DNA of 64,000 bases, taken from the NCBI RefSeq assembly GCF_001194135.2, contig NC_068981.1, positions 107,346,770 through 107,410,769 of the forward strand, read 5' to 3'. Source of the DNA: Octopus bimaculoides (taxonomy: Eukaryota). The position numbers and the translations under genes are program-made. Positions within the stretch are counted from its first letter, which is position 1; each line of letters opens with the position of its first letter. The notes beneath the pieces were generated by a model. The model was not told the origin of the DNA, did not search any database, and saw nothing but the letters and a program-made list of their open reading frames with translations. This document shows, piece after piece, positions 9,129 to 35,335 of this stretch.

Positions 9129-9253
9129 CAAGTTACAGTAAACAGCACACTGACTCTCAAGAATATGGATGCTAGGTTGTTGGTCAAGCAATTTTAACTG
9201 TATAAAAGCAGGTAGTTGCCTAAACAGCATACTTGCAAATGAAGTATAAATAC

Positions 9254-9337
9254 CATTTTGTCAGAATAGATGTTCACCCACTCACTGTGTTTGGCATTGT
9301 TTAGCACCAATGGTCGACTGAGAACAGGAAGATATTC
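9254..9337 (-). CDS. CACNA2D: alpha2delta exon variant B (84 nt, phase 0/0): [28 protein letters not shown], a homologue of the exon at 28689-28772
   Basis: Acceptor ttgatttgttcaaag, donor gtattt; stop-free; same length and phase as variant A with 11/28 identical aa (Y2,V5,L6,R8,P9,L10,L12,N13,W20,Y24,D26). Not in the ORF track. Confidence 0.85.
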
Positions 9338-12300
9338 CTTTGAACAAATCAAGGTTTTCAAGTTAGCCAAATCAAAGGATTACATTGTAAAATATCCAAT
9401 GGGATACTAAAAATGGAATTTACATTAATGTCTTTCTAAAAAAGGAACGGAAAGTGTATCTTAATAAAAAGAAAATAAAGAAACAATTATGTTAGTTCTG
9501 GATAGAAACAGGATGCAAGAGTGAGTTTATATATAGACTAGCTATTTGAAAAAGTATAAAAAGAAGAAAAAAAACTACGAATAAAATCAAGAATAGTCTT
9601 TCTTATGATGTCAGTCAGGTCCATTTAATATCTGTGTATAGTAAAAAAGAGTGTAGAGTAATAGAATTGTCTACATGAGAAATTAACACTGAAACACGAG
9701 TGCCTAGTAAATTATGTGAAATTTATGGACATTTGGAAGCTTATGATAATGATAGAATATGCAACAGAAATCAGCTAACTTGCTGAGAGATAACAGATGC
9801 TTAAATTCGTTCCTTACTATATGTATCCTCAAGACTGAGATAAAAAAAAATATATATAAAGCATTTGGTATGAAAATAGTACTCCATTATCATAAATCTA
9901 TAAATTGAAAGAGGCTGTCCAAAACTTCAAAAATTTAGGCTTGTGAATTCAGTATATTCTAACAAACACATAATATAGCAAAACAAGTTTTAGTATTATG
10001 TTAGACTCTAACAATTTTTAAAGTTGATCTTGAAAGTATTGTTTTAGAAGTATGAAAGATGTGCTGAATACTATTGCACAACCATAACTAGAACTGGAAA
10101 CAAGAATTTTATACAAAAAGTCATCAATATAAATGTTTATTTTTGTTTAGATGAGGTGAAGAAAAGCATGAACATTAATGTAGTGAAGAGAACATTAAGC
10201 TATTTATAAATTAAAATTTTGGAAAATTTTCCCAAGGTTTTAATGATTCTCAATTAGTTTTAGATTTTATTGAAACTGCTTCCTTTCAGATTTAAAACAG
10301 ACTACATATTCACAATTTTCACCAAACAGAAAAATAACATATACTCAAAGGGATAAACCAGACAGTTGATATATTTCTGACAGTATTGGAAACTATTTCA
10401 TACACTCGTCATGATATAAGAAAATGCTTCAGAGTTATGACTTGGTAGTTTCTATGTGTAGAAAAGAACAAATACTGTTTTTGATGAAAATGTGATTGTG
10501 CTTTTCCTTGCAAAAAACACAAAAACAAATATTAATGGACTTAATCAGTAATGCAATCAATGAGTTGATTAAAAAGCAGTTAGAAAATGAGAAAGCTGAT
10601 GTTGTAATGGCAAAAACCCTTTCCCAAGATAATAAAACACAGATAAGAGACATCTGTTATGTAAGGGGAGTGATCAATACATAGTGGCATAGTAAGTGCC
10701 AAGATTGATTGGGAGATGCTCAAAAGAAAATATTTTGATATTTATAGGATTTTCTCTTCACAAAAAAGGTATAAAAGAAGCAATAAATATAGATGATCAA
10801 CAAAGTCTAGAAAGAAGAGCCAATATGATTAGATATATCTATAATATAAATAAAAAAGGATAGACTGTTTAGATAAGCTATAAAAACAACTAGCAATTAT
10901 GAAGATCAGATGTTTTCTGCAAGAGAGAGATAACTTCAATCACATAGACATTCAGGAAACATGTATAAGAGTTGAAGTGAACACAATTTGTGGATCAAAT
11001 GATCAGTGGTTATCAAATAGAAATACTGTAAAGCTCAATATAAAAACTCACAGCAAAGTTGTTTAGGTTAAGACATGATAACAAACAACTATCTGAAGAG
11101 AGCTGATGATTCTATAACACAGAATATGGATACAAAAATTTTGATTGATACAATCATTAAAAACAGAATATTGCAGCAGATTCAGTACTCTGTTACTCTC
11201 TCTCTCACACACACACATACACACAATACAATACACACACAATACAATATATATATATCTTAATATATAAAAATATATATGAAGTAAATAATGATTGTAA
11301 AGCAGTTTTAGAAGCTTATCATCAAACTTTACCAAATTGCAGACTACTTCCCATCACTGGAATTGGACACATGTTGGCGAGTCATCATCATTTAATATCC
11401 ACTTATCCATGCTGATACATCATAATATTACAGTATATACAGACAGAAAATTCTGCAAATTTGCAAAGTTGATGGAAAACTTCCTAAATTGTTCAATAGC
11501 CCCATCCACCTTACACACTATAGGTGTAGTTTAATATTCAATTTAAAAAAAAAATCAATACACTTTTGAGATATCCAACAATTTATCATTTCAAAATGTA
11601 AAACATTTTATGTGATATTTTAAATTCCAAAAGCCATAAATGTTACAAAATTGCAAATTAACCTACCAGCATTACAGGAATAACTGGTCATGTAACAGGA
11701 CTTTTTGACTACTTGAACAAATATATTAGAAAGTAGAATAGGGATTTAGAATATATTTAAAATCATGTAAGCACATACCTATACACACACTGAATTCAGT
11801 TATATGTGCAGGTTAAGTTTTATGAGACTGACAATCCTAGCATTAATTCTTTTAATTCTCTTTTGAAAGGGTCTGGCAACAATTTCTTTTCTAAATTATA
11901 ATCTAAAACATTTTTAAAAAAACCTTTTAAAGAATTAACATTGCTTTTAAACATTCCCTTATATCTCACAAATCAAATAATCATTGAGCACTTTTCTCTC
12001 CTTCTTATTAAGTTATGAGATACATTTTGCAATTGTTTAATTGTATTTAAAGCTTCAATGTGTGGTACAGTGGCAAAATTGGTTGAGAGTTGAGCAAAAT
12101 ACTTTCTAGTATTTAGTTATGTCACTTTATGCATTGGTTTTCAATTATTTTTTAGTGAGTTGATTTTCATACAAACCATTGAAATGAAACTGGAACAGAA
12201 GTTAGGCAGCTCGCCTAAATGCACAATACACTGGCATGAATAGCATTTGAATCAAATTTAGATGCGCATTAACCTTGCAATTATTTTACATATTATATAA

Positions 12301-15300
12301 GAGATTGGAATTTAGAAATAAAATATCAAATTTCATAGTTATGTTTGTTTTTGAAGATTTCATTTGAAATTTAAACAATTATAACTAATTTTCATTAAAT
12401 AATTATTTGCTCAAACTAAATTTTGCAGTAAATTTTGATGGTTTGGGATTTAACTGCAATTGTCAAGTTAATCTGCAATAGATATACTACACAATAGCTT
12501 CTACTGTAAATAGTTAAATATATTATCAAACATATATATCATATAAATTGAGCATTTCTAACAGTCTTTTAATGAAAAGTATGTTAAAATTATTGTTGCA
12601 TAAATTTTAAAAGTATTTAGAAAAAATTTTTGTATAGTTGACAAAACTGAAAAAAAATTGTATAATAGGCTATATTTTCAAATAAAAGAGTAAAAAAATA
12701 TGCATTTTAAATTTATACATATTGTTATAGATCTTTTCATAAATTTCAAATTATTCACTCACAGTACAGTCAAATGAACATTACTTCTAATGTAGAAACA
12801 TGTAGATCTATCATGTAAATCTATGATTAGTTGTCTATTAGAGTTGAATACATGGCTAAATTTTCATTTGTTTAGCAAAGTAAATACAAATGACTTCATA
12901 CCTTTAGATTTTTGTTCTAAAAATATAATGCCTCAATGTATGTTACAACAGTCTTCTCTTCTTGGTTACTAATCTGCTTTAAATTAATCCATCAGAAGGA
13001 ACCAGATATAAGCCTAAGGTCAGCTGAAACATGGTACAAACAAATTAAAGGAACAATGATGCTATGTTTAAAGAAAATAACTTACATTAATATTCATCAG
13101 AATGTTTCAGATCTAATACAGTTATAAATAATCATAAAGATATACATTCATATTTCTTTCCATTTCATTTTTAAAAAAACATTGCAGCATTAGATGCTTC
13201 CAGAAAAAATTTTTTAGATGTATGATAAAAACCTTTTGAAGCACAGTGGATTTAACCTCATGATAGAAACAAATCAAAGAATTATAAACCTATTCTTAAT
13301 ATTGGTAAAGTCATTTTCATTATGAAGTTTTGTTTACTGAAGAAAATAAGTGGATATTAAAGGATATTATGACATCTGGTTTACTGGCAATAAGACTGTA
13401 ATCCTGTCCTGTTCTCTATGAAATTTGGAATATACCTGTAGACAAATATATATAATTACTCTTCAGTGATATCTAGTATAACTACTAGTGTATACTAATG
13501 TATTAATGTAGTATAACTACTAGTGTATACTAATGTATTATTGTAGTCCCAGTGACGGGACTAAGCAGTTGCTCAAACAATCACTAAAGCCAACTCAAAT
13601 CGTTAAGAGGCTTCTACGTAGACACAGAAGCCACTAAGGGAGCATGTACATTGTTTCTTCATCTGTTAGAGTTAGCAACAAAATCTTCCTCAAAATTCAA
13701 TTAGTAAAAATTTTAAAAATTTAATTATGTGTTGCTAAGAGGACAAGCAATTTGATTTCATAATCTATAAATTACAGAAATAGCTCCAATAAAGTACAAA
13801 GTTCTAGTGGTATTCAAATTAATACTAGGAGTATATTTCATACCACACAGGTTTTACAAGCTAGAAGAAATAGATATTTTCACTATATGGGTAGAAATAA
13901 AAAAGAATAATAATAAAAAAAAACATCAGAATTGTGATAACTATGATTTATATAGGAGGTGCCGGTGGCACGTAAAAGCACCCACTACACTCTTGGAGTG
14001 GTTGGCATTAGGAAGGGCATCCAGCTGTAGAAACTCTGCCAGATCAGATTGGAGCCTGGTGCAGCCTTCTGGCTTGCCAGTCCTCAGTCAAATCGTCCAA
14101 CCCATGCTAGCATGGAAAGCGGACGTTAAACGATGATGATGATGACAACATTTGTAAATGTTTTATTTGTATGATGTTAAGTAAAGATCATAAAAAAATA
14201 TTTAGTATGAAACTAATGGTCACCATTATCTAAAAAATATATGACCAACATCATTTTGCTAAGCAAGTAACTAAGATAATCATGTTAAATGCAGATGTGA
14301 AATAAATATACAAAAAGCTATCAATCAAGAAGATTATCATAATATATTTGCTATTGGGCTGATTACTGATAAAAAAATATTTGATTTAAAAACTAGATTG
14401 TACTATAAGGAATGGAAAAAAATTTTAGCCTAATACCTCTAAAACAAACTTAAGGCATTTTTCCATGTGTTATCAATTTAAATTTATTTTCCAGTTAATA
14501 CATCTCTTTCGACTGAAGTTTTACCAGAATGTAAATATACTTCTTTTTTATGTCTTGAATCCCAAAATAATGATTTTGTTCAGAAAAAAATACATGACAG
14601 CAGAGATCCCTGTTTTGTTACCAAAAGGAAAACCTTTCTTTCACCCATTATGAATACAATATAAAATTCAAAGGCTAGAAATGTACTCTCAAGAACCATA
14701 CAAATTGTTCATAATCATCAGTTGTTAAAAGCTCAAAATGAATATGACACACTCTCCACATAATATATGCAATTATTAATATTACTAACTGTATAAATGA
14801 ATTTCTTCATTCACAATGAACATAAAACTGTCAATTGTGAAGCTATTATATATTGTTAGAAACTTATACTAATAACAAACCACTTATTCTTTAGTATATT
14901 TAACCTTCAGATTTTCATACCTAATCTCTTCCACAGCAACATTTAGTTGCAATTCAGTGACAGACTTCACAAGGTGAGCCAAGTGTTGGCACACAGAACC
15001 TCTCAAAAATCTGGTCCTGAAACTTTCTGATGGCTTTATTCTTCACTAAAATAGTTCATTATGAATATGGAACAAATGGTTCTACAACTGAGCTGGGTGG
15101 GACAAAAATTCAAATTGCATCCTATCAATTATATTTTGTACCTGTGTTACAACCAACCTCTTACCATTTTTATTACTTAATTAAAAAAAAAAATTAATAA
15201 TATCATTTTGTTTTGTTTTAATAACAAATGACAAAGATGTTCCTATATCAATCCAATCCAATTTAAATGTGCTAAGAATATAAGAAAACATGGGGTACAG

Positions 15301-16133
15301 ACACTTAATTATTCTATGCATATAATTTAATTTATTATTTTCCGATGTACATTAAAAGTCAGGAGTTTAATATATATTAATTGTAAATTAAAATTTCCTA
15401 AAACATTTTAATAGAAATATTATCATTAATGGATCACTAACCAGATTTAAGTATTATCATACAATATTGAATATAGTGTTTTGTACAGGAGTGAATTGCC
15501 CAAATGAGCACAATTTTGTAATAAAAATGTAATTTTAGTTTTAGCAAAAGAACTAATGCCTTTTTAAGGAACAAAATAAAGACAGCAAAGTTTATAATTC
15601 TAAGTTTTTGGTAATCACCTTACCAACTATATCTTTTGTTGCTTTATGGTTTACTATAAAGAAAATTTAAATGAAAACAACAAGTGGTAATGTAATATGT
15701 GACAGGTGCGTTATTAAGAGAAAGTTTATTTTATAAAATATTGCTTTATTAAGAATACTGCTTTGTTTATATACATATGTATATACATATATTTATTTAT
15801 TTTATTGACCATATACACTCAATGTACATGTTTTGTTTGTTCACTGGTTTTCTGAAGTATAGCACTTGAGGGATGACTCTCTCATCCCTAGTTCAATTCA
15901 GGCATGTGATATTGATAAGCCACAAAAATGGTGAAATACCATCACTCCTGAATTCGATCGGAGGCAAGTTGTCTCACCTGTCTATGACTTCCAGGAGTTT
16001 TAATAACAATGAGGAAGTCCTCCCCTAAGCACTATAGCGCACCGAAATGGCAAACAAACAAAACACATACATGGAGCATAGGCAGTCAATAATAATTTTC
16101 TCAACACTAACACTGTTTTCAATTTGTCATTGA

Positions 16134-16175
<42 letters not shown>

Positions 16176-19100
16176 CAGTTGATATTGAAAACTGGCATCC
16201 ATCAGAAATTAACTAATTGAAGTCAATACTTGATGGTTAAAATATTAAGGCTGTATTTACTTTTGCTTTAACTAATAAAAGAAGCCAGTTTAAAATATCT
16301 TAATCTCAAAAGTTTATACAAGAAACAGGAACTCATTGTAGTCAAGAGACCAAAAGAGAACTTCTATGTGACATTCAAGAGATATTGTCTTCAAATCAAT
16401 CCTTTCCATCTCAAAAGAAATCATATAGTCCTAATTTCCTCTCTAAACTGATGGTAGATGGTTAATGCTTGGAACATTTTTGAAAAATACTGTTTATCAG
16501 AACCAAACAGGGGTTAAACAATGACAACATAAATATATCAACAAAAAGGATATATTATTGTTGAAGATCCTGTACAGAAGACATTTGACATATAGGAAAA
16601 TATGCTAATTCACATTTCCACATTTTCTCATATTTCCAATGCACTATTCAAAAAATATCTAAATATGATTTCTTATGTTGTGAATTATTACAGTGGTAGA
16701 GGATAAAAAATGGCTATTTCTTTCATTCAAGTTTATCTTACTGTTTTTAAGGAAAAGAAAATCATTCTAGAAATCAATTTGAAGACTCAGTTACCAAGAA
16801 CTATCAACCGAGTCATGGTGTTCATAACAATGCAATTTAAAACAAAAACAATTTGTGTTTATAATTTATTAATCAACATGAATTAAGTAGGGAAAAATTC
16901 TAACATGAAATTATCATTCTTTTATGCACAATGCATATTTTAGAAAAACAAATTTGCAAGGAATAATTTGATGTATTATATATTTTATTTAGTTTTAGTA
17001 AGAGCCATTCTACTTTGTCTGCACCTTATATCATAACTCATGCCCAAGCAATAGAGGTAGAGTGGTTGGAACTATGCAAACACTAAATTTTTTAACAACA
17101 TGCCAATTGTCATAACAATAATGTAGATTAATAGAAAAAGTAAACAACAAAGCATTAAGATATCTAAAACCATGATCAATTTAGGCTTTATCTAAAGACA
17201 GCATATCTATTCTTCACTTATTGAAAAAATAAAAGTTCTATTAATTATTAAAGAAAAAGAGATTATTTATTTTAATATTACTGAAGGCTCTCAAAATTGG
17301 TATATGGTGAAATCTTCCTTGAAATAAATTTTCATGAGAGAGAGAGAGAAAGAGAGAGAGAAGCCTCACTGAGAAAAGACTTAGATTAGCAAGTATGATA
17401 AAACAATGGACATCTTAAGAACAATGCTTTTATACATAGATAAACAGAAATTTTAGATCAAAAATTCAAAAGTCAACATTCACCTAATTATAAGAAAATG
17501 TCATGAACATGTAAAGGGAAATTTTCTATCCAAGCCTTTAAATTCCTTTATTTTAATTTATTTGGCTGTGTTAACAGTTTTAACTACTCTCAAAACATTT
17601 TAAATGCAACTGCTTCATGTGCTTCATGTTTGCAATGGATAAAAAAAAAAAAAAGTAAATGTTCATCTAGGAAAATAGCATATCTATCTATAATGTAATG
17701 GGAAAATGATAGATAACAAAGTCCCTGAAACCTCAAAACAACACAGTACTTTGGATGTAATAATGCTATTTTGTAAAATAGAACATTTTTTAAAAAGCAA
17801 CCCCTCTTTAATATTTCATCAACATTTGTTTAGCTTGCCAAACAATGTTCAATCAAATGTAATTGATTAATGTATAAGGCATCCCATTTATTCAGCTATT
17901 GTAAATTACTAGTATTTGAGTTTTATATTGTTATAATATCTTCATATAAATTATCTGTCAAAAAAATTCACAGAAAACCTTTGATATCTGACAAAAGGCT
18001 CCATAACTAAACAACAATTCTATTGATTGAGTAAATTCCAATGTTCTCATTATTATTATTATATACAACTTATTTCTTATACACAAACTGTTTAGCAATA
18101 AGATTTTAGAAGTCCAAATGACAAGCCATTAAACAGGATTTTTCTAGCTCTAATTATTTAATAGATTTTAAAATTTTATTAATATTTTTTTTTTTTTTAA
18201 TAGAGAATTCCAGTTATGCATTCTGTTTATTCTTTATATTAACAAAAGTATCCAGTATATGGACTATTAGCAACAGCTACCAAACTACTCATTTGTTTTA
18301 GAGATAGTTTTGATGATCAACTAGTCAATTATTTTAATTCTACTTTTAGATAGTTTCAAAGTAAGACAAATATTCAGTGCATGAGTAAGCTGAACTGTGA
18401 AGTAGAAGTATTTGATCAGAAGTCAAAACATACAGTAAGTCTAGATACTGCAAAGAAATTCATCTGGATGTGCTACCATTCCTGCTAATTAGTCTAATCA
18501 TGAAGTAAAGTAGTGTGGTCAGGTAATACTACAGCACACACCTTAAAAGTTAAAATGAGTGCTTTTATAAAATTATCCTCCAGACCCTTTGCTTTTCTTC
18601 CTACATTCTAAATATGCAACAAAATTCTTGAAAATTCACAATGATTATGAAGTTAATTTTTGTTTTAGCTGAAGAACTATAAGCTTGTGCCTCTTCCTTG
18701 TATTGTGCCCTGGGGAAAACAATGTAAAATTAATTCTATATTATATATGACAATTTAATGCTGGCATCTGATTTTTACGTTGGGGCCAGTTTGAATCAGA
18801 ATATTTTAAAAGTTGATCATGATACTTTTTGAAATGATAAAAGGAGGAAACAATGATAAATAGAAAATATAGGGATATTAATTTTTGAAAATATACATAT
18901 ACTTGCTTTTAGTTACAGAGAAGCCACTAAATTATGATAACTATTACCACCACCAAAAATGATCACACCCAGTCAAATATGCACAATTTCATATTTGAAT
19001 AATAATCCTGAAAGCAATTCCACCATGCCATTATCATTTTATAAATCAATTAGAATAATCATCTTTATTTTCTAGCAAACCAAACAAAGAATACAACTAA

Positions 19101-22100
19101 CATATAGTAAGGGAGTATATGTTCATTTTTCTCAAATAATGAATAAATGTATACAATTAACAATCTCAGATTTAATGGTGAACAATATCTTCATATAAAT
19201 ATACATCAATATGTATACACAGGTAATTTTATTTGAGTTTAAATCTCAGCTAAATTTTTTTTCCTTTCATTTGTTTGTCAAAAAGTAAAACTGATATATA
19301 TTTACATTCAAAATAATTTATCTGAAATATTTTTTTATTTTTATATATTTGAGAAAAGTTTACATCATCAGAGCCTCCTATAGTAGTGTATTCCCAGTTT
19401 TGTGATATATATGAAAGAAACAGTATTTACTATAACATTTCTAAAGAAGTTAATGATTCTTATAGAGAGAAGACATGCCAATGTTGTTTTTAGCAGAAGA
19501 TAATGAAAAAGAAACCATTAACATTTCTTTAAAAGAAAACAGTGGGTATTTGCAGCAGTAGAAGCAACCCTAAACTTATAAATTTTGTCAGCTATATAAG
19601 TATTAAGTGTTACCGAACGGTCTAATCCAAGAGACCAATGAAAGTAGTAAGATGCTGTTCCTGGAGGACCACCCATATGTTTCAAAAACTCCTGTAGGTA
19701 ATATAGATGCAACAAAATATTTTTATAAAAATGTTAACAAAAATTTTCATAAAGTGAAAGTCTAACAAAAATCCACAGGAAAGAAAAACCTGAGAAAAAT
19801 CTGGATAGAATGGAATATTATAAAATTAGGTTAAATAAAAAAAAATATTAAAGTATAAATAACAATACATTTCTGATATGCACCTGGTTTGATATTGACT
19901 GAAAGAAAAGTTTTAAATATTTATAGACAAAATTTATAAAAAATGTATTTTTAAAATAACAATTACAACATGATTTTTCATTTAAAACCAATCTGTGAGA
20001 TCCATAACAGGAAGGATTGGGGTGATAATTGGTGCAGGTGAGAAATAAATGAAATAAGCTGGGTAACTAGCATAATATGTGAAAAAGAATATATAACAAA
20101 AGTGCTTGAAAATTTGGTTTAAGAGAAACTGCTTTAGCCTGATGTAATTATATATACTTGAATAGTAATTTTGAGAAATATATTGAAGTTGATATAACTA
20201 ATTAAAGATTGGAATATTCTTTTCAAATACATTACTGATATGCCTGTTCTATGTTAGAAAACAAAACTGATTAATAAGTTTTAGATTTTGTTTTAATACT
20301 TGAAAAACTAAAGATAATTTTAAACACGAATAAACATAATAGCATTAATTTTTATATGTATAAACATTTTCATTTCCTAAACAGGAAAAAATTTCAGTGT
20401 CATGTCTAAATTTCAGAAATCCTGAAACAAATTCTGTCTATAAGGGTAATTTAATCGTATCTAAATTATTATGTAGATTTAACTAAACAATTCTTTTTAA
20501 ATTAAGGAAAATAGATTTTTTTTAAATATGTATTTTTTAAAAATATGTATGTAATAAAAGTCGTAATTTTTTCTATTGTTTTCATTTTCTAAACTATTTT
20601 AAAAGCATTAATCATGTACCTATTTCATCAGAAGCCATAGATGTACATCAGTAGTTCCCAAATATATTTTACAATATAGAACAAATGAAAATATTTTGGC
20701 ATACATAGTGCATAAAGTCAATGTAGTAAAACAGGATTTTTATTTTAGTCTAGTTTGAACTACAGAAAATGAATAAATATGAATTTTATTCAATAAATAA
20801 AACAGAGTCTTCATGATTCATCATGATTTTTAGATTGAGAATTTAGTTTGTATTTTCATATTTTAAAAATATAATTCCATTATTTTTGTAATGCATTTAA
20901 CTACATTTCAAGACACAATAGTATGCCACAACACATTCATGAGAAACCTCTGATATACATTACTTTATCATTTTTTTTTTACGTTTTGTTATAAGCATGC
21001 AAGAAAAACTAAACTTCTTAAACATAAGATGGTTCACTGAACTGCTAAATATGGAAATAACAAGATGTTTGTGCACTCAACTTATGGGAATATATTCCAT
21101 CCAATGGGATTGTTACAATTGTAGTTTCCAGAAGTTTGTTCCATTATAATCTTATATTACGGATGTTAAATGATAATATGCTGATTATATTATGTATTTT
21201 CTATCTATCTATCTAAGGAAAATAGAATGCACACACACACACATATACTGTCTATTTTGGCATGGTTTCAATAGCTGGATGCACTTCCTAATGCCAACCA
21301 CTTTACAGAGTGTACTGCGTACTTTTAAGGTGGCATTGGCACAGGCACTTTTATGTGACACTGGTATATATTATCAAAGGAAAATAGATAATACACCCAC
21401 ACACATGTATGTATAGCAAGCTATGACAGTTCTTTTGGTCGCTACTATCAGGCACCAAACATGTGATCTAATGAGGGTTTGAAGTGAATAGTAACCACTC
21501 TCTTGACTTGAACTGTAATATATTTTACAATTTTACAAGCAGTTTACAATTCCAAAAGTGCAATTCCAGGCTTGATACACTTTTTCCCTTGTTAAAACTA
21601 ATGCTTTATAAACAATAGTTCAAATATTACTTCCTAGTTACCAGCATAGCTTTCATCCTGTTTAAACTGGTCGTGCTAAGGTAATTTTCATTTGGTACAA
21701 ACAGCAAGGTATTATCATTGTTTTCACAAATATTGGCCAGATAATCAATGAAAACTCAGAATAGGAGTAGGTCAAGTAGAGCCATATGGAACTGATGCAA
21801 ATAAGATAATAACATGGCTGATGTAACAGTCTATACCAAAGAAGATAGAGACTCAATATGAAAATTGAAACCAGCTTAGGAATAAAAAAAAAAAAAAGAC
21901 ATCACCATTTAATGTCTGTTTTCCATGCTGGCATGGGCTGGACTGTTTGACAAGAACTGACCAGCTGGGGAACTTCCAATTGTCTATATCAGCATGGTTT
22001 CTATTGCTGGATGCCCTTCCTAAATCAACCACTTCAGAGTATACTCGGTTGTTTTTTATGTGACACCGGCACAGCTGCTCTTTATGTGGCACTAACTTGG

Positions 22101-23933
22101 ATGCTTTGTATGTGACACCAGCATGGGTACTTCGTATGTGACACTGGCACAGGTGCTTCGTATGTGACACTGGTACGGGTGCTTCATATGTGACACTGGC
22201 ACAGGTGCTTTGTATGTGACACCAGCATGGGTGCTCCTTACATGACATTGGCACGAGTGCTTCATATGTGACACCAAAACGGGTGCTGCTTACATGACAC
22301 TGGTATGGGTTCTTTTTACATGATACCAGCATGATGGCTTTTTTATGCCGCCATCACAAGGGCTTTTTATGTAACATTGGCATGAAGGCTTTTTATATGG
22401 CACTGGTACAAGGGCTTTTACGTGACGCTGGCACAAGTGCTATTAATGTGACACCAGCACCCGCAAGCCCTCAAGAGAAGGACTTTTTGGCTGAGAGAGG
22501 GATGTAGAGGATATGCCTGCATGTATGGATGGTCATAGTTTACTTAGCTTTATAGGTCTTCTCAAGCAAAGCAAACTGCAAGAAGTCTTATTCCCTTGTC
22601 ATCTCTGTGAGGCCCAAAGTCTGAAGATCCTTCCTCACTACTTCATACCCCATCTTTCTGGTTCTACTCCTTCCATACATTCCTTTCACAATTAAAGATC
22701 AGCATTTCTTATGCAGCTGTCCTTAGCTAACTGATTCTCCTGAAGTTGCCTTATCAGGAAGAAAGCATCAGTAGTGCTTCTCTCTGGCACAAAACCAAAC
22801 TGCATCTCATTCAAGCTCATGCTCTTCCTGATTAGTTGAGCTATAATCCTCATTGTAACTTTCATCACCTGGTCCAACAATTCGATACCTCTGTAATTAT
22901 TTCTGTCTAAGGTGTCACCTTTACCTTTGTAGCAGTTGACTATAATGCCACTACACCAGTTATGGGGCATGATTCCCTCATGGATAACCTAATTATCTGT
23001 ATGGGTGAATAGGATCCCACTCCACTAGATATTTTACACATCTTAGTGGCAATTCCTGAAGGACCAGGGGCTTTCCCTGCCTTCATTGCTTTATCTACCA
23101 AGCTACTGTCAATTCGGATAGCTGGTCTCTCTTTCGGATCCACATTAGGCAGATTCTCCTTTTCTCATGCATTCTCTACCTTTAGCAGCCTTGCCTAGTG
23201 GCATGTCCAAGCCCCTTTCTTTGCAGAAACACTAACTGTAAGTGTACCATCACTCATGCAAACACACTTCTCATACTGCCATTGACTAGAATGGTTGGTC
23301 CCTTTGCTAGGCTCACATTTGGAAGGCTTTCTTTCTCCCAAGTATTCCATGTTTAGAAGCCTTTCTTGTCTCTTTTCCAAATTACAAAGTACAAATGTAC
23401 CATAGTCCATTTGTATACACTTTTCTCTTTCACAACGTCTCAATTTTCTCTCACACATTGTCTTGCAATCCAAAACACCTTAAGCCACTGGTCCTCATGT
23501 CACAGAACATTGGCAAACTTCTTCCTTTCTGCTTCTCCCCTCGCTAAATATGCTGGTCTCCTAGCTTCCCTTCTAGCTACCTAATACAGTTCTTACTATT
23601 ACCACTTTTCCAGTCCTTCCAGGCCCTTTTCTTCACTCTAATGGCCCTGTTCGATCTCATGTTAGAGGGAACTTTGCACCAGCTATAAATTTGGTAAGTG
23701 ACCCTCATTAACTTATCCTGTAGAAACCTCCAGTTGTCCTCTATGTTATATGTTTTTCTCACTCAAACTGTGATGACCCCAAACTTATTGGAGTCATATC
23801 CCTTGAAAATACATAAATATGTGTGTGTGTATCATTTAATATATACAGTATTTGAATGAGCTACTATTAGTTTCATGCTGTAAAAACATAAACTGGCAAG
23901 CTTAAATATTAACAAAACAGTAAATTATATATA

Positions 23934-23991
<58 letters not shown>

Positions 23992-24001
23992 NNNNNNNNN
24001 N

Positions 24002-24043
<42 letters not shown>

Positions 24044-24071
24044 TAGATAGATATATAGATAGATAGATAGG

Positions 24072-24109
<38 letters not shown>

Positions 24110-25595
24110 TATTCTTCACCTGTTGCAGTACCCCCACTAGACTTGCCTAATGAGGAGAATTGCTAGAAACCCAGCAAGGCAAAAACAAAACCTGTGAAAA
24201 GGATGGATGAACCTAGTATAGGTTCAACAATTATTGGCACTGAATTTCTTGCCCTGGCTTGTCTCTGGATAATATTAGTAGGGTTGAGAAGGTCTGTGAT
24301 GTACATTGCAAGCCTTATTGGACTTAAAATTTTAGGCTTTGCAATCACTGGTGAAGCAGCTTTCTGATGCCTGGTCAAGTAGGAGGGCACCATAGCAAGC
24401 ATGGAAGCCACAGGCATGAACCCAAATGAAGCTCACTGTGGGTGCAATAACTTCATGCACAGGCAATGCTGGCATTTTGCAAGGGCAATGGTCAGTGATG
24501 GTTTTCCTCAGTCATGAGTGGATAGCCATCATCATCATTATATGAATATATATATATCATCATTATCATCACTTAATGTCTGTTTTCCTTATTTATATAT
24601 ATACATACATACATACATACATACACACATATGTGTGTATACATATATATGTGAGGTGGTATCAAAAGGTTCCCAGACTAGTTATGTTTAATGGAAAATA
24701 ACTTATTTACCTAAGTTTTAACATCACTTCCTTCAAAATAGTCACCTTGCACAGCAATACACTGGTCCCAGCATTCCTGCCACTTTTGGAATCTGGCCTG
24801 GAAATCATTTTCCATAAGCAAGTCAAGGACCTTTTGCAATTCACTTTTGATCTCAACAATGGTGTTAAAACAGTGACCTTTGAACGGCATTTTCATCTTG
24901 GGGAAGTCCACAGGTGCTAAATCTGGCAAATAACATGGGTACAGAGGTGATACCATGTTTTTGATGAGAAACTCACAAGCAAGGAGAGTTTGATGACAAG
25001 GTGCATTGTCATTGTGAAAAACCCATTTCTTTGTGCTCCACAGATCTGATTACTTTTGTCAAATGTCCTCCCTTAAATGCTTCAAAATGTCATCAATTGT
25101 CCTCCAACAATCCCAAGATGATGAATTTTCTCCACATCTTAATGAGGTGGTGTGTGACACTCATGGCAAGTCTTCCAGATTGTTTGCCAAGTGGTTCTTC
25201 TGCTTTTGAAGTATCCATTTACTCTAAACATTACATACAACCCATTGCCTAGTTGCCGTAAGCTTGCCAAAGCATGCTTAATGTCTTTGTAGCAGACTAC
25301 CCAAGTTTAACATAAAATTTCACATTGGCTCTTTGCTCCAACTTCCTGTCCATGACAAACATTGTAGACTACAGCATACACATGATCACAAAATACGAAT
25401 TTCACAACAGTAATGTTACTCGGCACACTGTCTCACAAAGGTCACAGCTAGCTCTCACTGCACACACAACCATGTGCTACCATCTGTTGGCATGCTACAG
25501 AACTAGTATGGTAACTTTTTTATACTACCTTTTATATGTTTCAGCCCTAAGGCTGTGGCCATGCTGGGGCAATATATATATACATACATATATAT

Positions 25596-25681
<86 letters not shown>

Positions 25682-28600
25682 GTAGAAGAAATAAATTCAA
25701 GGAAAGCAGGTATGAGAGAAAGAACACCACAAAGACTGAAAACAAACTGAAGGAGGACAGAATAGATCTTGACGCAGAAAGCAAGAGAAAGACAAGAAAC
25801 AGACAATTGGGGATTATAATTTTTTTTACCATTACCTTGTGGGATAGGTTTCTTTTGCAGTGCATTTATAATTAGTTGATTGAATGTTTTCTACTGCAAT
25901 GTCAATATGACTGGTTGGCATTGTTGAATTTTGAAAATCTTGATTCTGTCTCTTGGACTTCATACCATTGAGCATTTGTAAAGTTTGTTAAAATGTTTTT
26001 GCTTACTTCATTGTTGTGCAAGTTAGTATGCAAGTTAGTATGGTGGTCCAGAGAAAGTTGCAGAATTGTTTGCCAAGTGGTTATGGTAGCTTGACTCGGG
26101 GGTTGAGAAAGTGCTCTAGGAAGAATTGTCATGCAGAGGCTTGACAAGTAACAATTATCTGGTTCACATCATGTGGCCATTTGCTGTATAATATAATTGT
26201 GTATGTGTGTGTGTGTGTATGTGTGTACATATATAATATTTTGCATGAAAGTTATATGAATTTGTTCATAAGCTTGCTTATGTATATTATGTGTATATAG
26301 CATCAACACTGACAAGGTATCCACCCAAGAGTGATGAAGAACATTCAGCACATACCTTATTATAATAGATTATAGCAGAACTATGGCTTGATTAGTAGAG
26401 CTCTGAAAGTTTTTCTTTCTTTCTTTCGTTCTCTCTCTCTCTCACACACACATGTGACTGAGGAAGGGAATTGGAGAGAAAGAAGAGAAAGATCAATGAG
26501 ATCAAAGAGCAATGACATCAGAAGACATGAATGGGTGGGAGGAACAAAAGTATTATGGAATGAGGGTAAGGATATGTATAGGTGGTGAGGAAAAGGGGAG
26601 TTGTAAGCAAAAGCAGGTGAACAAAAGTAGAGATTCTGATGAGATAAAGTTGAGAGTAGATGAAGGGTCGCATTAGAGGTGGTTCAGAAGAAAAAGAACA
26701 CTGGCTGGCAGCACAGCATGGTAAGTTAGAATATACTGAATGGGAGAGATGAGGGTGACTTAATGTCATCTCCTATGTATAGTTCTGCAGAAGGGCAAGT
26801 GGATAGTGTGATAAGGGTAGATCAATCAGTACAGGTAAGAGGATTGAAATTTACCTGGTGGAATTTTCCGTAGTGGAATTTACCTAGAACTGTTAGAGAC
26901 ATAGATGAAAAGTGCATTAAAAAATAGGTAGATGAAAGGATGGATCAAAAATGAGGTAGGTTTAGCAGGGTTTAAATATTAAAACCTCTAAACACTACAG
27001 TTGAATTAGAGTATGTGTGGTTGTGAGGAGAATGGTTCAACTGCAGCACTATGTATCACCAATCGATACAGCTCTTTGACATATCTATGAAATACATCTT
27101 TCAGTTAGCCTTCAATTTATCCCATGTTTGCTTGGACTCCCTTTTCCAGGTCTTCCACTCAGTACTTATGCAGCAGTATTCCTCCATGCACATCACACAC
27201 CCATACCAACATAACCTTCTCTCTTGTACACAACACCCAGTTTCTTTTTCAGTTCATTCGCACTCTGGTGTTCATGGACACTAATATTACATGCATACAA
27301 AGATGCATGCACATGCACTTATATACATATATACTCATAAATATATATGCACATATATACACACACACACATTTAAAAATACTTACACATACATATACAC
27401 TACACAAACATATAAATAAATGCACTTATATACAACTCACACACATGCATATGTACACACTTAAACACACATATACATATGTACACATATAAACACACAC
27501 ATGTGCGAAGGCGCATGGCTCAGTGGTTAGAGCATTGAGCTTACGATCGTGAGGTTGTGAGTTCGAATCCCGGACCGGGCTGCATGTTGTGTTCTTGAGC
27601 AAGACACTTTANNNNNNNNNNTCCCGGACCGGGCTGCATGTTGTGTTCTTGAGCAAGACACTTTATTTCACATTGCTCCAGTTCACTCAGCTGTAGAAAT
27701 GAGTTGCGACGTCACATGTGCCAAGATGTATCGGCCTTTGTCTTTCTCTTGGATAACACTGGTGGCATGGAGAGGGGAGGCCATCATGCATGGGCGACTG
27801 CTGGTCTTTCATAAACAACCTTGCCCAGACTTGTGCCTGGGTGGTAACTTTCTAGGTGCAATCCCATGGTCAGTCATGACCTAAGGGGGTCTCATCAATC
27901 ACACACACATACATATGTACACATATAAACACACACATATATTCATACAGTGTATATATATTATACATACACACTCACACAGACACAATGTGCATACATA
28001 CATGCACCCATCTACACACACACATACATAAACTGGACACATCAAATGATTGAGCTCTGTAGGGCCTTTTGCTACTAACAAATGTATGCATTCTACATAA
28101 CTGATTTCTTATTTGAACTATGATCTTCCAAGATCATATATATAGACACAAACTCACACACGTGTGTGTGTGTGTGTGTGAACTGGTGTGTTATGTCCCC
28201 TTATTTTAGCAATGTAGCGTAGTTGTTGAATGTGTACTTAAATTTATAACATTGTCAAAATCCCTCTAAGTTGGTACCATAGCACAGCTGCAGCTGAATG
28301 ACTGTAGCTATCTTAAGAATATAAGAAATACGCACAAATTGTTTTATGTTCAGGCTAAAATCAGATACACTTGACATCAATAAAAACAGTCTCACAGAAT
28401 GCAGAAAGTAGAGAAAAACAGCAGGAAATGCACTAACAGTAAGGGAAACAACATATGGTAAAGATATGAAAATAATTGCACAAGAAAAAAAAAAAAGATT
28501 TTAATATAAGCAAGCAACAGTTTGCATGAAATAAATAAACACAAGAAAGTAAAAGAGAGTAAAGAAACTAGAGCACAAGGCACACAAGCAGTAAGAAAAG

Positions 28601-31600
28601 AAAAAAGATCATGTGACATAACACTGTGTTGATAACTAATTAATATAGGAATATAAGTTGTAGAAGGAAGAGGTAATAGCCAGCTTACATGGCTATCCTG
28701 GTACACCCCAGCCCACTTGATGTATTCAGAATGATTAAGGGCCAAAGGTCGAGCTAGAACTCCTATATAGTGCTGGAATAAATAACATAGCAAGCATAGC
28801 TTAAGTCACACAGTTTACAGCAGTACCAACATATTTTACACATGGATTGCAACCAAAATAAAACAATAAAAAATTTCCAAAACTTATAGTTATTACTTTT
28901 CTTTTGTATTTAGTAATAAATGTAGTCATTTATATAAATATTTTCTATAAAATATGCATTGATTCTTACTTTGCATATAATTATTAATACAAAAATTAAA
29001 TTTTGTTTGTGAAATTCCTTTCAAATAGCTTTCGTCATCATTAATCAATAGCCTTTTATTGCTGGTTGAAATATACCCCAAAATTACATTACAAAACAAA
29101 ACAGGCATTATATAGATATATGTAAATCAATATGTATGAATATATATGTAAATTAATATGTATGAATATATCCATGTATATAAATATATTTATTTATATA
29201 TATTATTTGTAGGATTCATTAGGGTTATTATATATATGTGCGTGCATTCCTAATGTATTTTTTAACATTATTATTACAGTTGTTATTATCGTTGTTACTA
29301 TAACTATTAGTAGTATTTTGAACTGATTGAACCCCAAGCAAAATTTAGTTACATTCCATTAGAATCTGATTTCAAATTCTATGAACGATGACTTTAGATT
29401 TCCTCCTTCTAAAGTGAAAAAAAAATAAATACAAGTACTAGCACCAAATAAATGCTCATAATTATCAAAAGTAATGTAAGTTAATATTAGTATTAGTAGT
29501 GCTGGGAATAATGGCAATTGTTAATTAGCATGGACATGAATAAATAGCAATAATACTATTATCAGTAGTAATGTTATTAACTGAACTAATTAATAGTTTC
29601 TTTTTTATAAATTTTCTAAAACAATATGTGTTGACCTATACCAAATGTGTTTTAGAATTAAACTCTTTAAACAGGAGGTGTATTTAATTTTCACACAAAT
29701 GATGGATTTTTTTACGTAAACTATCTGGTAGAAAATGGAAATTCTAAGAGAGGTACCATTTTATGTTGGGTGTAAAAACATGAATTGACAAATATATGGT
29801 GATATCTTAAATAAGGATGATGGAATGGAGCTTATGTTTTACAAAGCAAATTTTACATATCACCAATGAAGGAAGGGTGTGCTGAAAAATTATTCTAGTA
29901 TAATCATCATCATCATCGTTTAACGTCCGCTTTCCATGCTAGCATGGGTTGGACGATTTGACTGAGGACTGGTGAAACCGGATGGCAACACCAGGCTCCA
30001 ATCTAATTTGGCTGAGTTTCTACAGCTGGATGCCCTTCCTAACGCCAACCACTCAGAGAGTGTATAATAATTTATAATAATCAAGGGGATAATTCTTTAT
30101 GCTATGAGTTATGTAATTTTGCTTTGCAAACAGATTATTATAAAACAAACTATTGTTTGTCTTTAACATTTGTTTATTAACCAGAAAAATTACCCTTATA
30201 CAAAGTCTCTTACAACCAACAAAGAATCCTCTACACGCTAGAAATAATAGCCAAGTCCCCAACTCCCATCTAATATTTTAGAAGTACAAGACAATATCAA
30301 TAACACTACACAGCTGTTTGACCTGCTAGAAAGTGGCCAGATCTCCAACTCATACCACATCATTTAAAAAGAAATTGAGACCATGTCTACTCAGTTTTTA
30401 TCTAGGGTTAAAGAATGACAAGTTCTCATAATTTTTTTACATTTCTTTCTATTTTTTATTCTCCCTCACTTTCTTATGAAGAAGGATAGCAATGCTAATA
30501 TCAAATCCAAAAGCAATCATCAATATCAACATTATGAACATAATATTGATAATTAGAATTAAGTGAGCATGAGGATGATTATGTGCTTAGTCCAGTCAAA
30601 TTTTAAATAAATTCATTTAACAAAATCAAATTCTGACTAAGTTTATACTGAATTTAATTTCTTATCATTCTTAGTTGAAAATTGTTATATTCTTCCAACC
30701 TTTCTAACATCAAATTTGGCGTTGTTGTGACATTGAGTAATATTCAACAAACTCAAATTATTTATGCCTATACAGCATTAAAAGCCATAATTCAACTATG
30801 AATATTATAAATTTTTACATTTTCTTGGCTCCTCTAGGCTCTTTAATTATATTTCTCCTATTATATTGTTTATTTTAATGGTATATTTGGATTAGACTAT
30901 AAATATGAAGTATATAACAAAAGAAACATAAAAGTTTTTATAATATTATTTATATTAAATTTGAAATTTCCGTATATTCTTTAACCCATTAATAACCAAT
31001 GCCCCATTTTTTGAGACATGTTTATTTACCAAATATAATTCATTACTGGTAATTACTCTAACAAAAAATATTGCATCTATTAATATTTGAATATTTGGTA
31101 AGGTTCAATGAGCTCTTACAAAAATACATATCTCCTCAACAATAATGGATATAATTTTCCTTTTGGAATAAAAGATTTTTTTTAAATGTGTTTTTTTTTT
31201 CACAAGAAACTACATAAAAAGAGCTATTTACTTATCATTATTGGAATCTTCCTATGACTTAATTACTTTCTACATTTTTCATTTCTTTCAAATATTAAAA
31301 ACAATTTTATATAAAAAAAAAAAATCAATGCTTAAAAATATTTACACAAAAAAATTCGGAAACAATGATAACAAGAATCAATGCATATTCAAAACTAGCT
31401 GAGAATTAGGCAAGTAAAAAAAAAATACATTTTCTGTTTCACTGAATGCTAAAACCCCTTGAAGGTGCAAGATTCCTTTGAATCTAATTAACTGTTCTTC
31501 CTGATTTTGTTTTCATGCAAAAATATCTTATAACTCCATTATAAACAGCTGATGTTTGTTTTTATACTCTAAATTAAAAACAAAACAAATTAGATTTAAT

Positions 31601-34600
31601 TTCCATAAGTAAACCTGTAATGCATTTTTTTAAAAAAAGGTTCTGGATTATTTAAAACTTTATGATTTAATTTTAATCAGTAAATGGTAAAATATGATTT
31701 GAGACATTTTCTGAATAACACCTGGAAAAAATATAATCCTTTATAGAATCATGCTACAATTACAGAATAGCCATTTAATGACGAGATACATGACAAAGTA
31801 AGTTTTTAGATTTAATAAAATATCTCAAAATAGAAGTTAAGAAATATTTTGAACTTGCAAATTAATTCACTGATAAATATTTACAATTACAGAATTATTT
31901 AAAATGAAAGTCGTTATTGAAGAGTATCAGAAATGAATATTGTTTTAATGAATATTGCTTTATATTCAAATCAAATTTGTACTGGGAATTTTAAACTACA
32001 CCATACTTACTTGAACTTTGGATCGTATAGCACCCATGGCTGGAATCTGTGAAAAATAACCTGAAAAAAATTATAGCTATCAGTATAACTATCATCATTA
32101 TCAAACCATTAACAAAATTTTCAAAAGTAAAAATGTTTGCTCAATATGCTTTATATATATTTTGTTGTGTTGGGGTGAGTCATACTGTCTTAATATATAT
32201 ATATATATATATGAAGATGAGGTTGTCCTTGTGCTCTTGTGCTGGTGACCAATTCCCCTGACAAGAGATCTTTTGGGACCCTCCTGTCCAGCATGCAATG
32301 TACATGACCAAGCCAGTGCAGATGAAAGGGTGAGTATACTGGGTATAGTACTGACCACATTTATATATATGTGCCAAACAGCCATTGAGCATGATGTGGT
32401 ACTCTGACTTGTTGAATCTTGTTGAACCATCCAATCAGTGCCAGCATAGAAAATGGACATTAAATAGTAAAGATCATGGCATTGAAACACAGTTATTCCA
32501 ACTTTGTGTGGTAAGTTGCTTGCTTACCAACCACATGGTTCCGGGTTCAATCCCACTGCGTGGCATCTTGGGCAAGTGTCTTCTACTATAGTCTCAGGCC
32601 AACCAAAGCCTTGTGAGTGGATTTGGTAGACGGAAACTGCAAGAAGCCCGTCGTATATATGTATACATATGTGTGTGTGTATGTTTGTGCATCTGTGTTT
32701 GTCCCCCCCAACATTGCTTGACAACTGATGCTAGTGTGTTTACGTCCCCGTAACTTAGCGGTTCGGCAAAAGAGACCGATAGAATAAGTACTAGGCTTAC
32801 AAAAAATAAGTCCTGGGGTTGCTTTGCTCGACTAAAGGCAGTGCTCCAGCATGGCTACAGTCAAATGACTGAAACAAGTAAAGAGTACTATTAAAAAAAA
32901 GGTTCAACAATTCTTAGACTTTTTTATATTCAACACTAACAGAGAAGTTAGCATAATTGTTTCACTTCAGGTAATGGGTAGTACTTTTAAAATTATCTCC
33001 TTGATATTTTGTCAACTATACACAATCCAAATCTTTGGTGGATCTGAAAACTTTAAAAACTTTGTTTATGTATCAATGATTGGAAAAGGCAAAGTGCTTT
33101 ATAAATGCTAATTTGAAGATTTACAAGACGTTGTAGGAAAAAATAGAATGTAATTAAATCACCAAGCCATGACAGATTTAGAACTGAGTATAATTAAGGC
33201 TTCTAGAGGTAAAGTGCAAGGTGTCACTAACAATGTTAGTTTTTTTTTCCATTTACAATGCTGTATTTGGCTGAAAATTCAGAAGAATGAACTCAGTATA
33301 CAATACCACAACGACAAAAAACTTCAGTTTAAAATTGTGTAATGTTTTTGCATTAGCATTCCTTTAGTCTGATAAAAATTCAAGGAGTTTTTAATGAACT
33401 GAAAGTCTTTTTATCTAAAGAAGCCAGAAAATTTACTGACTGACTCAAGGCCAAGAAAAGATTTGCATAAAGATGCAGTTGTTTGATTACAAACATTATT
33501 TCTACCAGATTTTTGTTAGTATATAATTGCATGTACCCTAAACAACATTGAAGTGTGACAGATGTGAAAAATTTAAGGGATACTCATGCTGGTGCATATC
33601 AAATTATAGAATTTCAAAAAGGGCTGAATCACACTGAAGGTGATAATAAATGTATTCCCTAGAACAAGATATGTCTCAGAGAAAAAAAGGCAGGTTTTCA
33701 TTCACTGTCCCTCTGATACATATATTTTCATTTAAAAAGTAAATGTATTTTAATGTTTCTCAAATAGATTCACATTTGATAAATGTGCTTTAAATTTTTT
33801 TTTTTTCTGAATATTTTTGGGGTTTTCATATTTCAGGATTTCAACATCTGAATGATATTTTGGGGATTCTGATATTTCAGGATTTCAACATTTGGGATTG
33901 ATAACCCACTTATACCACATTTATATGTATGTGTGTGAGCATGTGTTTATCTCTATTGTTGAGGTCCATATCTGCAATAACCAGTGGAAGTGCTGTAATT
34001 AATTATCTTTGTCAGTAGTTTTTGATCTTTTTATTAGTTAGCTAATCTGAATTGATATCTTGAATTTTAAAGAACATTAGAAAAGCAAGTGTTTTTGTAA
34101 AAACAAACGACACAAGTTTTTATAACATGGTTGTAAGGAAAACGTATGTTATATTACTTCAATGAAATGTAAGAAAATCAAAAGGATATGAAAATCTATT
34201 GTTTAAATTTGTCTGGCAATTTGGAACAGAATTCCTTTATTGTCATTTACCTTAAAGGAATTCTGTTCCAAATTGCCAGACAAATTTGAACAATAGATTT
34301 TCATATCCTTTTGATTTTCTTACATTTCATTGAAGTAATATTACATACATTTTCCTTACAACCATGTTATAAAAACCTGTGTCGTTTGTTTTTACAAAAA
34401 CACTTGCTTTTCTAATGTTCTTTAAAATTCAACATATCAATTCAGATTAGCTAACTAATAAAAAGATCAAAAACTTCTGACAAAGATAATTAATTACAGC
34501 ACTTCCACTGGTTATTGCAGATATCTTTAATCACAATTCTTTGTTTAATTTAACTAAAACAAACTAACCTAAAATACATTTTCCCCACATTACTGTGACA

Positions 34601-34712: not shown

Positions 34713-35335
34713 TTATTGCCAAGATGTCTCACATGCGCAAATTTACAGTATGCCAGAATTAAATGAATTCTAATAACAGGTACATTATGGGTACCTCATT
34801 GAATTTCAATCAACGTGGTCATTTTCATTTATTCTTTAAACAATCAACCAAATTCTTTTGTAAGATATTTCAAATCTATAATATAAGGGTTTATAACAAA
34901 GATTAAGGAGATGTAATAGATGAATTACTCAAAATATGTAAAAATATAATTAAGTTTGAAAACATCAAGTAAGGTTACCTCGATTACTACAGGCCATCCA
35001 ACGAATAGCAGACGTAGGATTTGCAGTAGGACCTACTGCATACGTGAAAACTCTCACCTGTAATAAAAAGAAATGTTATTACAACCAGGAATTGAACATA
35101 AATTATGTTAATATAGTCACAATTGTATTGGATTTAGTAAAAACGAACATAGTTGAAACAATGGACAGTTCACAACTAAAACTTACTTCATCAGAGGTGG
35201 CAGAAAGGAAAAGTATAGTCAATCTGTCAGTCTATTCTTACAAACTCATTTCTCTACTTCATATTTTATGATTATGATTTTAATAAGCTTTTCTATAGAT
35301 AAAATTAAAACTACATATGTATGTGTGTGTGTGTG

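Follow-up and report, generated by a model that had tools for sequence, protein, structure and literature searches.

We analyzed a 64,000-nucleotide stretch of the Octopus bimaculoides genome (contig NC_068981.1, positions 107,346,770 to 107,410,769), here called the window, in which position 1 is the first letter of the forward strand. By its alignments, the window holds the middle of a single gene for an alpha2delta (CACNA2D-type) auxiliary subunit of calcium channels, read on the minus strand. We consider it very likely that this one gene carries three ancient, homologous, in-frame exons (A, C, and B, in that order) that are used as alternatives and thereby swap a segment of the ligand pocket. 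The alpha2delta subunits control calcium-channel trafficking and synapse formation, and the pocket of their dCache_1 domain is the target of gabapentinoid drugs; to our knowledge, the role of the natural amino-acid ligand of the pocket is still unsettled. The cluster itself is not new, having been reported in 2018 (Dunn et al. 2018, Sci Rep 8:3263, PMC5818475). The present analysis adds the link to the pocket, the genomic anatomy, the dating, the conserved weak splice sites of exon B, a fourth variant in an oyster, and the extension to annelids.

Three homologous exons at one position of the gene

The three alternative exons lie on the minus strand at 28689..28772 (A; 84 nucleotides [nt]), 19614..19691 (C; 78 nt), and 9254..9337 (B; 84 nt). 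They are homologous, occupy one position of one gene in the order A-C-B, share the same phase (0/0) and frame, and are all flanked by AG and GT. The acceptor and donor sequences are ttattccag and gtaagc for A, attacctacag and gtaacact for C, and ttgttcaaag and gtattt for B. The introns between them are long, about 9.0 kb from A to C and about 10.3 kb from C to B. A sequence-only reading of the window, made before this analysis, had described A and B as a duplicated pair of 84-nt, phase 0/0, stop-free exons flanked by AG and GT. Read on the minus strand, both exons are exactly so; the cluster, however, has three members, and exon C (19691-19614) had been missed.

A and B have 11 of 28 residues in common, as had been counted before. 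Their DNA is more diverged, with identity at 44 of 84 positions overall and at 10 of 28 third codon positions, and the flanking 100 nt of the two exons match at 25%, which is the random level. Since the protein has been kept while third positions and flanks have diverged, these values argue for an old duplication maintained by selection on the protein. To test the resemblance against chance, a profile was derived from this segment in the alpha2delta proteins of other animals and compared with every one of the 2324 stop-free segments on both strands of the window. B was retrieved with an E value of 9e-13 and A with 1.7e-11, and the next best segment scored 0.063. With A and B so far ahead of any other segment, we rejected chance similarity as the source of their resemblance.

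Exon C came to light by a different route. It first appeared as a candidate in a plain scan for open frames between AG and GT, and it was recognized through an entry, "QEF..DRS," in the published table of Dunn et al. (PMC5818475). A profile of C-type exons run on the window did not detect it. Exon C sits between the A and B variants, as do the C-type exons of an oyster, a snail, a chiton, and the annelid Owenia (see below). Taken together, the sequence comparisons indicate that A, C, and B arose through ancient tandem exon duplication.

A single alpha2delta gene

Exon positions were first located by tblastn with a human alpha2delta-1 probe (used for locating only), and the boundaries were then read from the DNA. 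Conclusions about the gene come from later tool alignments, namely HMMER against solved chains and tblastn with a protein of the cephalopod Argonauta, and not from this probe. Beyond A and B, further minus-strand exons run from 48057-47926 through 32060-32011. The last of these (32011..32060, minus strand; 50 nt) is the constitutive exon directly upstream of the cluster; it ends ...AIRSKVQ in phase 0 and has the donor gtaagt. In a search of the PDB, the 282 residues encoded by the window matched solved alpha2delta-1 chains with an E value of 1e-88 when joined through exon B and 4e-86 when joined through exon A, and the HMMER alignment to these chains was colinear up to the final residue through either exon.

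A whole-library HMMER search identified an Argonauta orthologue (P0004; GAB1597394.1, "alpha-2/delta-2 isoform X4, partial") with 95% identity. This protein has all four Pfam domains of the alpha2delta architecture (VWA_N, VWA, dCache_1, and VGCC_alpha2), of which the window itself encodes only the end of VWA_N and the VWA domain, followed by the junction exon. In the Argonauta protein, VWA covers residues 209-381 and dCache_1 covers residues 408-536; exon B, identical at 28 of 28 residues, corresponds to residues 390-417 and so spans the junction between the two domains. It is followed there by GLGMVTTVTLPVYN..., the next exon (GLGMVTT...). When this protein was compared with the window by tblastn, each remaining exon mapped once and none was placed between A and B, bearing out the earlier view that B is not part of a second tandem gene. 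The next constitutive exon was absent from the window by regular expression and by tblastn and must therefore lie beyond coordinate 1. A homologous-protein search with the upstream exon plus A returned three metagenome fragments only and no animal proteins. The alpha2delta gene spans 198 kb in Argonauta and 174 kb in Ptychodera.

Exon clusters in other animals and the age of the duplication

The cluster was found in five other lophotrochozoan loci, those of the oyster Saccostrea, the pond snail Lymnaea, the chiton Liolophura, and the annelids Owenia and Lamellibrachia. In the oyster (locus L001), the A-type exon lies at 22303-22398, a D exon at 23960-24034, the C-type exon at 25087-25173, and the B-type exon at 26007-26090, with the next exon at 27591. 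The oyster RefSeq isoforms differ exactly at the cluster position: X2 has the A-like exon (EYVEVVARPLALKHTNFVKWTSSYKGSHGPSL), X3 has the C-like exon (DYLTHLATDRQEITSGDDYLQHRIQRDPR), and X1 (P0155) has the A-like exon and then the B-like exon (EYVPVLSRPAALQDIKEFKWGNIYNDSL) in tandem. The D exon is a fourth homologous in-frame exon, located between the A-like and C-like exons. It measures 75 nt, encodes DYVTVLSGSYHTELPLWTSVYQDRL, and has the acceptor ttcag and the donor gtattc; it occurs in none of the three RefSeq isoforms examined.

The cluster recurs in the other four loci. The pond snail (L002) has an A-like exon at 13474, a C exon at 15092, and a B exon at 17667; the chiton (L003) has a first variant at 21431, a C-like exon at 23367, and a B exon at 24223. 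Among the annelids, the basal Owenia (L007) has A-like, C-like, and B-like exons at 42110, 42547, and 44325, respectively, and Lamellibrachia (L004) has three variants. In the brachiopod Lingula (L005), there is one A-like exon, and the 6.6 kb (including 307 N) from that exon to the end of the contig contained no further variant and no next exon. Amphioxus (L006) has a single exon at this position.

Cross-species searches distinguished the variants by type. The oyster A-like exon matched window A at 1.8e-8 and window B at 1e-3, and it was the best match of exon A, across the bivalve-cephalopod split. The oyster B-like exon matched window B at 5e-8 and window A at 1e-5, and the Lymnaea B-like exon matched window B at 4e-9 and window A at 1e-4. 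By these scores, A and B pair type-specifically with their oyster counterparts as reciprocal best matches, in support of orthology. Since molluscs and annelids share clusters whose members match by type, the cluster is older than the mollusc/annelid split, that is, more than 500 million years old. The comparisons also identify B, and not A, as the ancestral, vertebrate- and deuterostome-like version.

Two side observations were made in these genomes. Window 9286-9340, within and just upstream of exon B, matches the B-type exon of the chiton (L003 24220-24274) with 84% nucleotide identity over 55 nt; the match takes in the AAG acceptor and many synonymous positions, which hints at constraint on the RNA besides the protein. 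In the amphioxus Branchiostoma lanceolatum (L006), the upstream 50-nt exon (GYYVDIPAVGAIRQKTQ / GYFLEIPAVGAIRQQTQ) is itself tandemly duplicated, with copies about 90 nt apart at about 9201-9251 and 9342-9392, and the deposited protein model reads through both. Because the length of this exon is not a multiple of three, the two copies would form a frame-enforced exclusive pair.

Mapping of the exchanged segment onto the ligand pocket

In rabbit alpha2delta-1, the gabapentin pocket consists of Trp207, Val209, Tyr219, Trp225, Tyr238, Arg243, Trp245, Tyr452, Asp454, Ala455, Leu456, Thr463, and Asp493 (10.1101/2022.12.05.519047). HMMER places the last five residues encoded by the alternative exon opposite Y452-L-D454-A455-L456, a stretch that holds 4 of these 13 pocket residues. 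Exon A reads Y-Q-D-S-H at this end and exon B reads Y-S-D-K-M, the Tyr452 equivalent being present in both (VYQD and IYSD, respectively). Exon C reads L-D-R-S, and in the multiple alignment it has Leu in the Tyr column and Arg in the Asp column. In C-type exons elsewhere, the Tyr column is occupied by Phe, Asn, or Gln, except in the chiton and Owenia, which have Tyr. Given that the last five residues map to the pocket, the choice of exon alters two pocket positions between A and B and drops two contacts in C. Tyr452 is included in the conserved amino-acid-binding motif of dCache_1, YxxxRxWY ... Y ... D (PMC9901441). We infer that exon choice yields isoforms with differing pocket chemistry and that the C isoform is probably unable to make the canonical amino-acid contact. 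The proposal made from the letters of the window, namely one gene with alternative homologous exons that alter pocket-lining sequence, thus finds support in the oyster matches, in the five loci with clusters, and in the mapping to Tyr452, Asp454, Ala455, and Leu456.

The remainder of the pocket is encoded in part by constitutive exons of the window. The RRR(P)W motif, of the alpha2delta-1/-2 type, is present and spans exons 44403-44346 and 42988-42938, so that the equivalents of Arg243 and Trp245 are in place (RRRPWY). The first of these exons (44346..44403, minus strand) starts with a split codon (A), ends with a split codon (W), and also carries the Tyr238 equivalent, which is Phe in both the window and Argonauta (DLFDV). 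The exon that encodes the end of VWA_N (47926..48057, minus strand) carries the equivalents of Trp207, Val209 (Tyr here), and Tyr219 (Met here). For Asp493, whose exon falls beyond the window, we take the alpha2delta-1 stretch GVDVSLED to correspond to GIDITVED of Argonauta, a match made by eye outside the tool alignments. Gastropod homologues were seen to have RRQSW instead of RRRPW, i.e., to be without the key arginine.

Splice sites of the three exons

Exon A has strong splice sites, its CAG acceptor being preceded by a pyrimidine-rich tract and its donor being GTAAGC; those of exon B are weak (an AAG acceptor and a GTATTT donor). The weak AAG acceptor of B, already singled out in the sequence-only reading, is kept in the B-type exons of the window, oyster, Lymnaea, and chiton, representing the four mollusc classes sampled, and also in Lamellibrachia. 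The GTATTT donor of B is present in the window, Lymnaea, and the chiton. By comparison, the acceptors of all A-, C-, and D-type exons are CAG or TAG.

These sites, together with the lengths of exons and introns, narrow the ways in which exclusivity could be enforced. Introns of 9 to 10 kb exclude steric hindrance, and exon lengths that are all multiples of three exclude a frame shift followed by nonsense-mediated decay (NMD); both points had been argued beforehand and stand. No donor (upstream gtaagt, A gtaagc, C gtaaca, or B gtattt) fits the U12 consensus RTATCCTT, which excludes incompatibility between U2 and U12 spliceosomes as the enforcer.

Alternative use and exclusivity

In the arrangement that we favor, one of A, C, and B would be spliced between the exon ending ...AIRSKVQ and the next constitutive exon (GLGMVTT...). 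The existence of three exons, their homology, their order within a single gene, their age, and the pocket map derive from the present analysis, while the use of a single variant per transcript is taken from the literature and from gene models. Among the models, that of Argonauta carries B only, Saccostrea X2 carries the A-like exon only, and Saccostrea X3 carries the C-like exon only. Of the published Octopus bimaculoides models, KOF93326.1 carries A and XP_014768966.1 carries C (PMC5818475). They are entered there as QHY..DSH and QEF..DRS, respectively; the former consists of exon A with the Q of the upstream exon in front of it, and the latter is likewise exon C, matched at both ends.

Several observations weigh against this reading. 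Exclusivity in octopus comes from the published table and gene models and not from transcripts, and any double inclusion, or skipping of all three exons, stays in frame. The RefSeq isoform X1 of Saccostrea has the A-like and B-like exons in tandem, and models from Lymnaea and Lamellibrachia, which are non-RefSeq and whose prediction method is unchecked, join two or three variants. The AAG acceptor is not universal among B-type exons, the B-like exon of Owenia having a TAG acceptor. Comparison of the window with four other loci revealed no conserved intronic sequence, the exons alone aligning, and no conserved docking or selector element was found. Lastly, the octopus pocket departs from that of rabbit outside the exchanged segment (Val209->Tyr, Tyr219->Met, and Tyr238->Phe), and any amino-acid binding by the octopus subunit is presumptive.

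The first group of these observations bears on whether the exons might be alternative but not strictly exclusive, with tandem in-frame isoforms (e.g., A+B) also made and tolerated. With all lengths multiples of 3 and all phases 0/0, NMD cannot clear double inclusions, and Saccostrea X1, an A-like exon followed by a B-like exon, is an isoform of just this kind. However, X1 could be an error of gene modelling, and the reservation given above applies to the tandem models of Lymnaea and Lamellibrachia. In addition, a second copy of the pocket strand between VWA and dCache_1 would be unlikely to fold, and in the Aplysia transcriptome three alternative sequences were found at the site (Dunn et al., PMC5818475). 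We therefore regard production of tandem isoforms as rather unlikely and retain the reading in which A, C, and B replace one another.

Mechanism of exon choice

Our best guess for how the choice is made is regulated competition among the three 3' splice sites, in which B, having weak sites, would be chosen only if it were activated or if A and C were repressed. Long-range RNA pairing is a possible aid to this choice. A scan of the window, oyster, snail, and chiton with RNAduplex gave long, loose duplexes and no shared docking site, the downstream constitutive exon being outside the window. There was one outlier, in which the start of the first intron (31811-32010) paired with the 200 nt upstream of A (28773-28972) at -60.5 kcal/mol, with a z score of -3.7 measured against 30 intronic windows; this duplex is itself long and loose, and AT-rich simple sequence is a possible cause.

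Far stronger pairing is predicted between two copies of a repeat resembling a short interspersed nuclear element (SINE). One copy lies in the intron upstream of A (29900..30064, plus strand) and the other lies between C and B (13986..14145, minus strand). These inverted arms are 92% identical and enclose precisely the exons A and C; the RNA duplex predicted for them is 156 bp long, at -298 kcal/mol. Such a stem might loop out A and C, hand the upstream donor to B, and in this way set exon choice. Yet the element, about 165 nt long, is present in eight copies in the introns of the gene in both orientations (the others at 1262-1428, 21900-22039, 35382-35539, 37915-37954, 44159-44203, and 63762-63926), and several competing pairs are about equally stable. 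Moreover, a mobile element cannot explain a cluster more than 500 million years old, and no intronic pairing is conserved across species. Control of the choice by the SINE pair is thus, in our judgment, quite improbable, and regulated competition among splice sites is the mechanism that we propose. The duplex formed by the SINE pair could serve as a substrate for RNA editing.

Retention of all three exons and integrity of the assembly

A further alternative is that B is effectively constitutive in octopus and that A and/or C are relics rarely or never used. The only close protein retrieved, that of Argonauta, uses B with 28 of 28 residues identical, and B is the version common to deuterostomes. 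Against this, A and C retain open frames, correct phase, and good splice sites, those of A being stronger than those of B; A still matches the oyster A-like exon at 1.8e-8; and published Octopus bimaculoides models contain both A (KOF93326.1) and C (XP_014768966.1). We consider it very unlikely that either exon is a relic, and we treat all three as alternatives that are in use.

The window contains two assembly gaps, both deep in the A-C intron and touching no exon or reading frame. The gap at 27612-27621 (10 N) has an exact 44-nt direct duplication on its two sides (27568-27611 = 27622-27665) and sits inside a SINE repeat with the tRNA-like box GGTTCGAATCC (window 27541-27700); it is probably a zero-length gap from an unmerged contig overlap. 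The other gap, at 23992-24001, has a (TA)n run on one side and a (GA)n run on the other. Both gaps fall within the A-B interval, and the window ends before the exon that follows B, so that linkage is not directly visible. Even so, it is extremely improbable that B (or A) comes from a second paralogue or was placed by misassembly. None of the other alpha2delta exons has a second copy within the 64 kb, and the same strand and A-C-B order recur in four independently assembled genomes, which speaks against a misjoin. Of the two gaps, the first is an unmerged 44-nt overlap and the second is in a microsatellite, and a recent assembly duplicate is ruled out by the 48% divergence of A and B in DNA. 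On the grounds of single-copy exons, conserved order, and gap anatomy, both a second paralogue and misassembly were rejected.

Remaining exons and intronic features

The other constitutive exons, all on the minus strand, were located by tblastn and their boundaries were read in the DNA. Following the exon with the RRR motif, the exon at 42938..42988 starts with a split codon (W) and ends with a split codon (T), and that at 41877..41976 opens with the split codon (T) and encodes the metal ion-dependent adhesion site (MIDAS) region of the VWA domain. Then come exons of 24 residues (41039..41110), 30 residues (40554..40643), and 43 residues (36349..36477), and an exon that encodes the end of the VWA domain and closes with a split codon (G; 34979..35057).

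Transposon remnants are present in the introns at 46783-47187 (plus strand), 24711-25022 (minus strand), 3-747 (plus strand), and 38084-38341 (plus strand). Among them is one open reading frame with a Mos1-type transposase helix-turn-helix domain (Pfam HTH_48, E value of 1e-5). There are also two reverse-transcriptase-like open frames and a translation containing ...PDLAPVDF that are without a clear Pfam match, and a sub-threshold PHD finger was seen in 3-254 only. We take the ...PDLAPVDF motif to be mariner-like. The A-C intron contains a 26-nt tandem repeat (window 22024-22459), of which a 17-mer, TGCCAGTGTCACATATG, matches at 16 of 17 positions a unit repeated in the equivalent part of the Lamellibrachia gene (L004 31437-32097); with an E value of about 4 per hit, this match is probably due to chance.

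Discussion

Three or four interchangeable versions of a pocket-forming segment have persisted in molluscs and annelids since before these phyla split, a natural experiment on pocket function. A comparison of the A, B, and C isoforms made by a single gene would reveal whether individual cells tune ligand binding or turn it off. We tentatively suggest, as something possible rather than probable, that ligand sensitivity is switched through splicing by the choice of exon: A and B would keep Tyr and Asp and differ in S-H versus K-M, C would be ligand-blind, and the weak sites of B would offer the regulatory handle. If this were true, some cells would receive alpha2delta subunits that are amino-acid-sensitive and others subunits that are amino-acid-insensitive, all from one gene. 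The value of the analysis lies in the map onto the pocket, the layout of the locus in the genome, and the age assigned to it; that the cluster exists was already published and is not a discovery of this work.

The sequence-only reading knew of no description of the phenomenon, but it is already in Table 1 of Dunn et al. (2018). Literature searches on exclusive splicing otherwise brought up alpha1-subunit cases and a paper on the first exon of human CACNA2D2. Those authors cloned the alpha2delta subunit of Aplysia and in Fig. 1 and Table 1 described "three mutually exclusive exons" between the VWA and Cache domains (PMC5818475). The location and the number of variants are the same as in the window, and their octopus entries are window exons A and C. 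Their Crassostrea entries are QEY..DSL, with the same ending as the B-type exon of the Saccostrea locus, and QAY..DPR, with that of its C-type exon. Records of the RefSeq type likewise already carry single variants, as in the oyster isoforms and the Octopus accession cited by Dunn et al. The published table gives the ends of the sequences only and has no entry for octopus B; genomic layout, splice sites, and age are not given in the paper, which predates the pocket structures and so makes no connection to ligand binding.

Clusters of more than two homologous in-frame exons whose exclusivity does not come from frame or sterics are known from Drosophila Dscam1 (exons 4, 6, and 9) and 14-3-3 zeta. 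The octopus cluster resembles them in these respects. No conserved docking or selector complementarity was found in it, and strong pairing was found only between mobile-element copies.

Alternative splicing inside the Cache domains is also known from vertebrate alpha2delta-1, in which splice regions A, B, and C have been described (Angelotti & Hofmann 1996; Lana et al. 2014, PMC3988960; reviewed in PMC9901441) and the deltaA+B deltaC variant has a lower affinity for gabapentin. However, the vertebrate regions are not homologous duplicated exons, and pocket residues are not replaced. The segment that is alternative in octopus is not among the alternative splice regions described for vertebrates, and amphioxus has a single genomic copy of it.

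The closest parallels in the channel complex itself are the exon pairs of alpha1 subunits, i.e., 8/8a of CaV1.2, e37a/e37b of CaV2.2, and those of Drosophila cacophony, which are likewise tandem exons of the same phase that swap a functional segment of the complex. These pairs belong to another subunit and another domain, whereas the octopus alpha2delta gene has a cluster of three members separated by introns of 9 to 10 kb.

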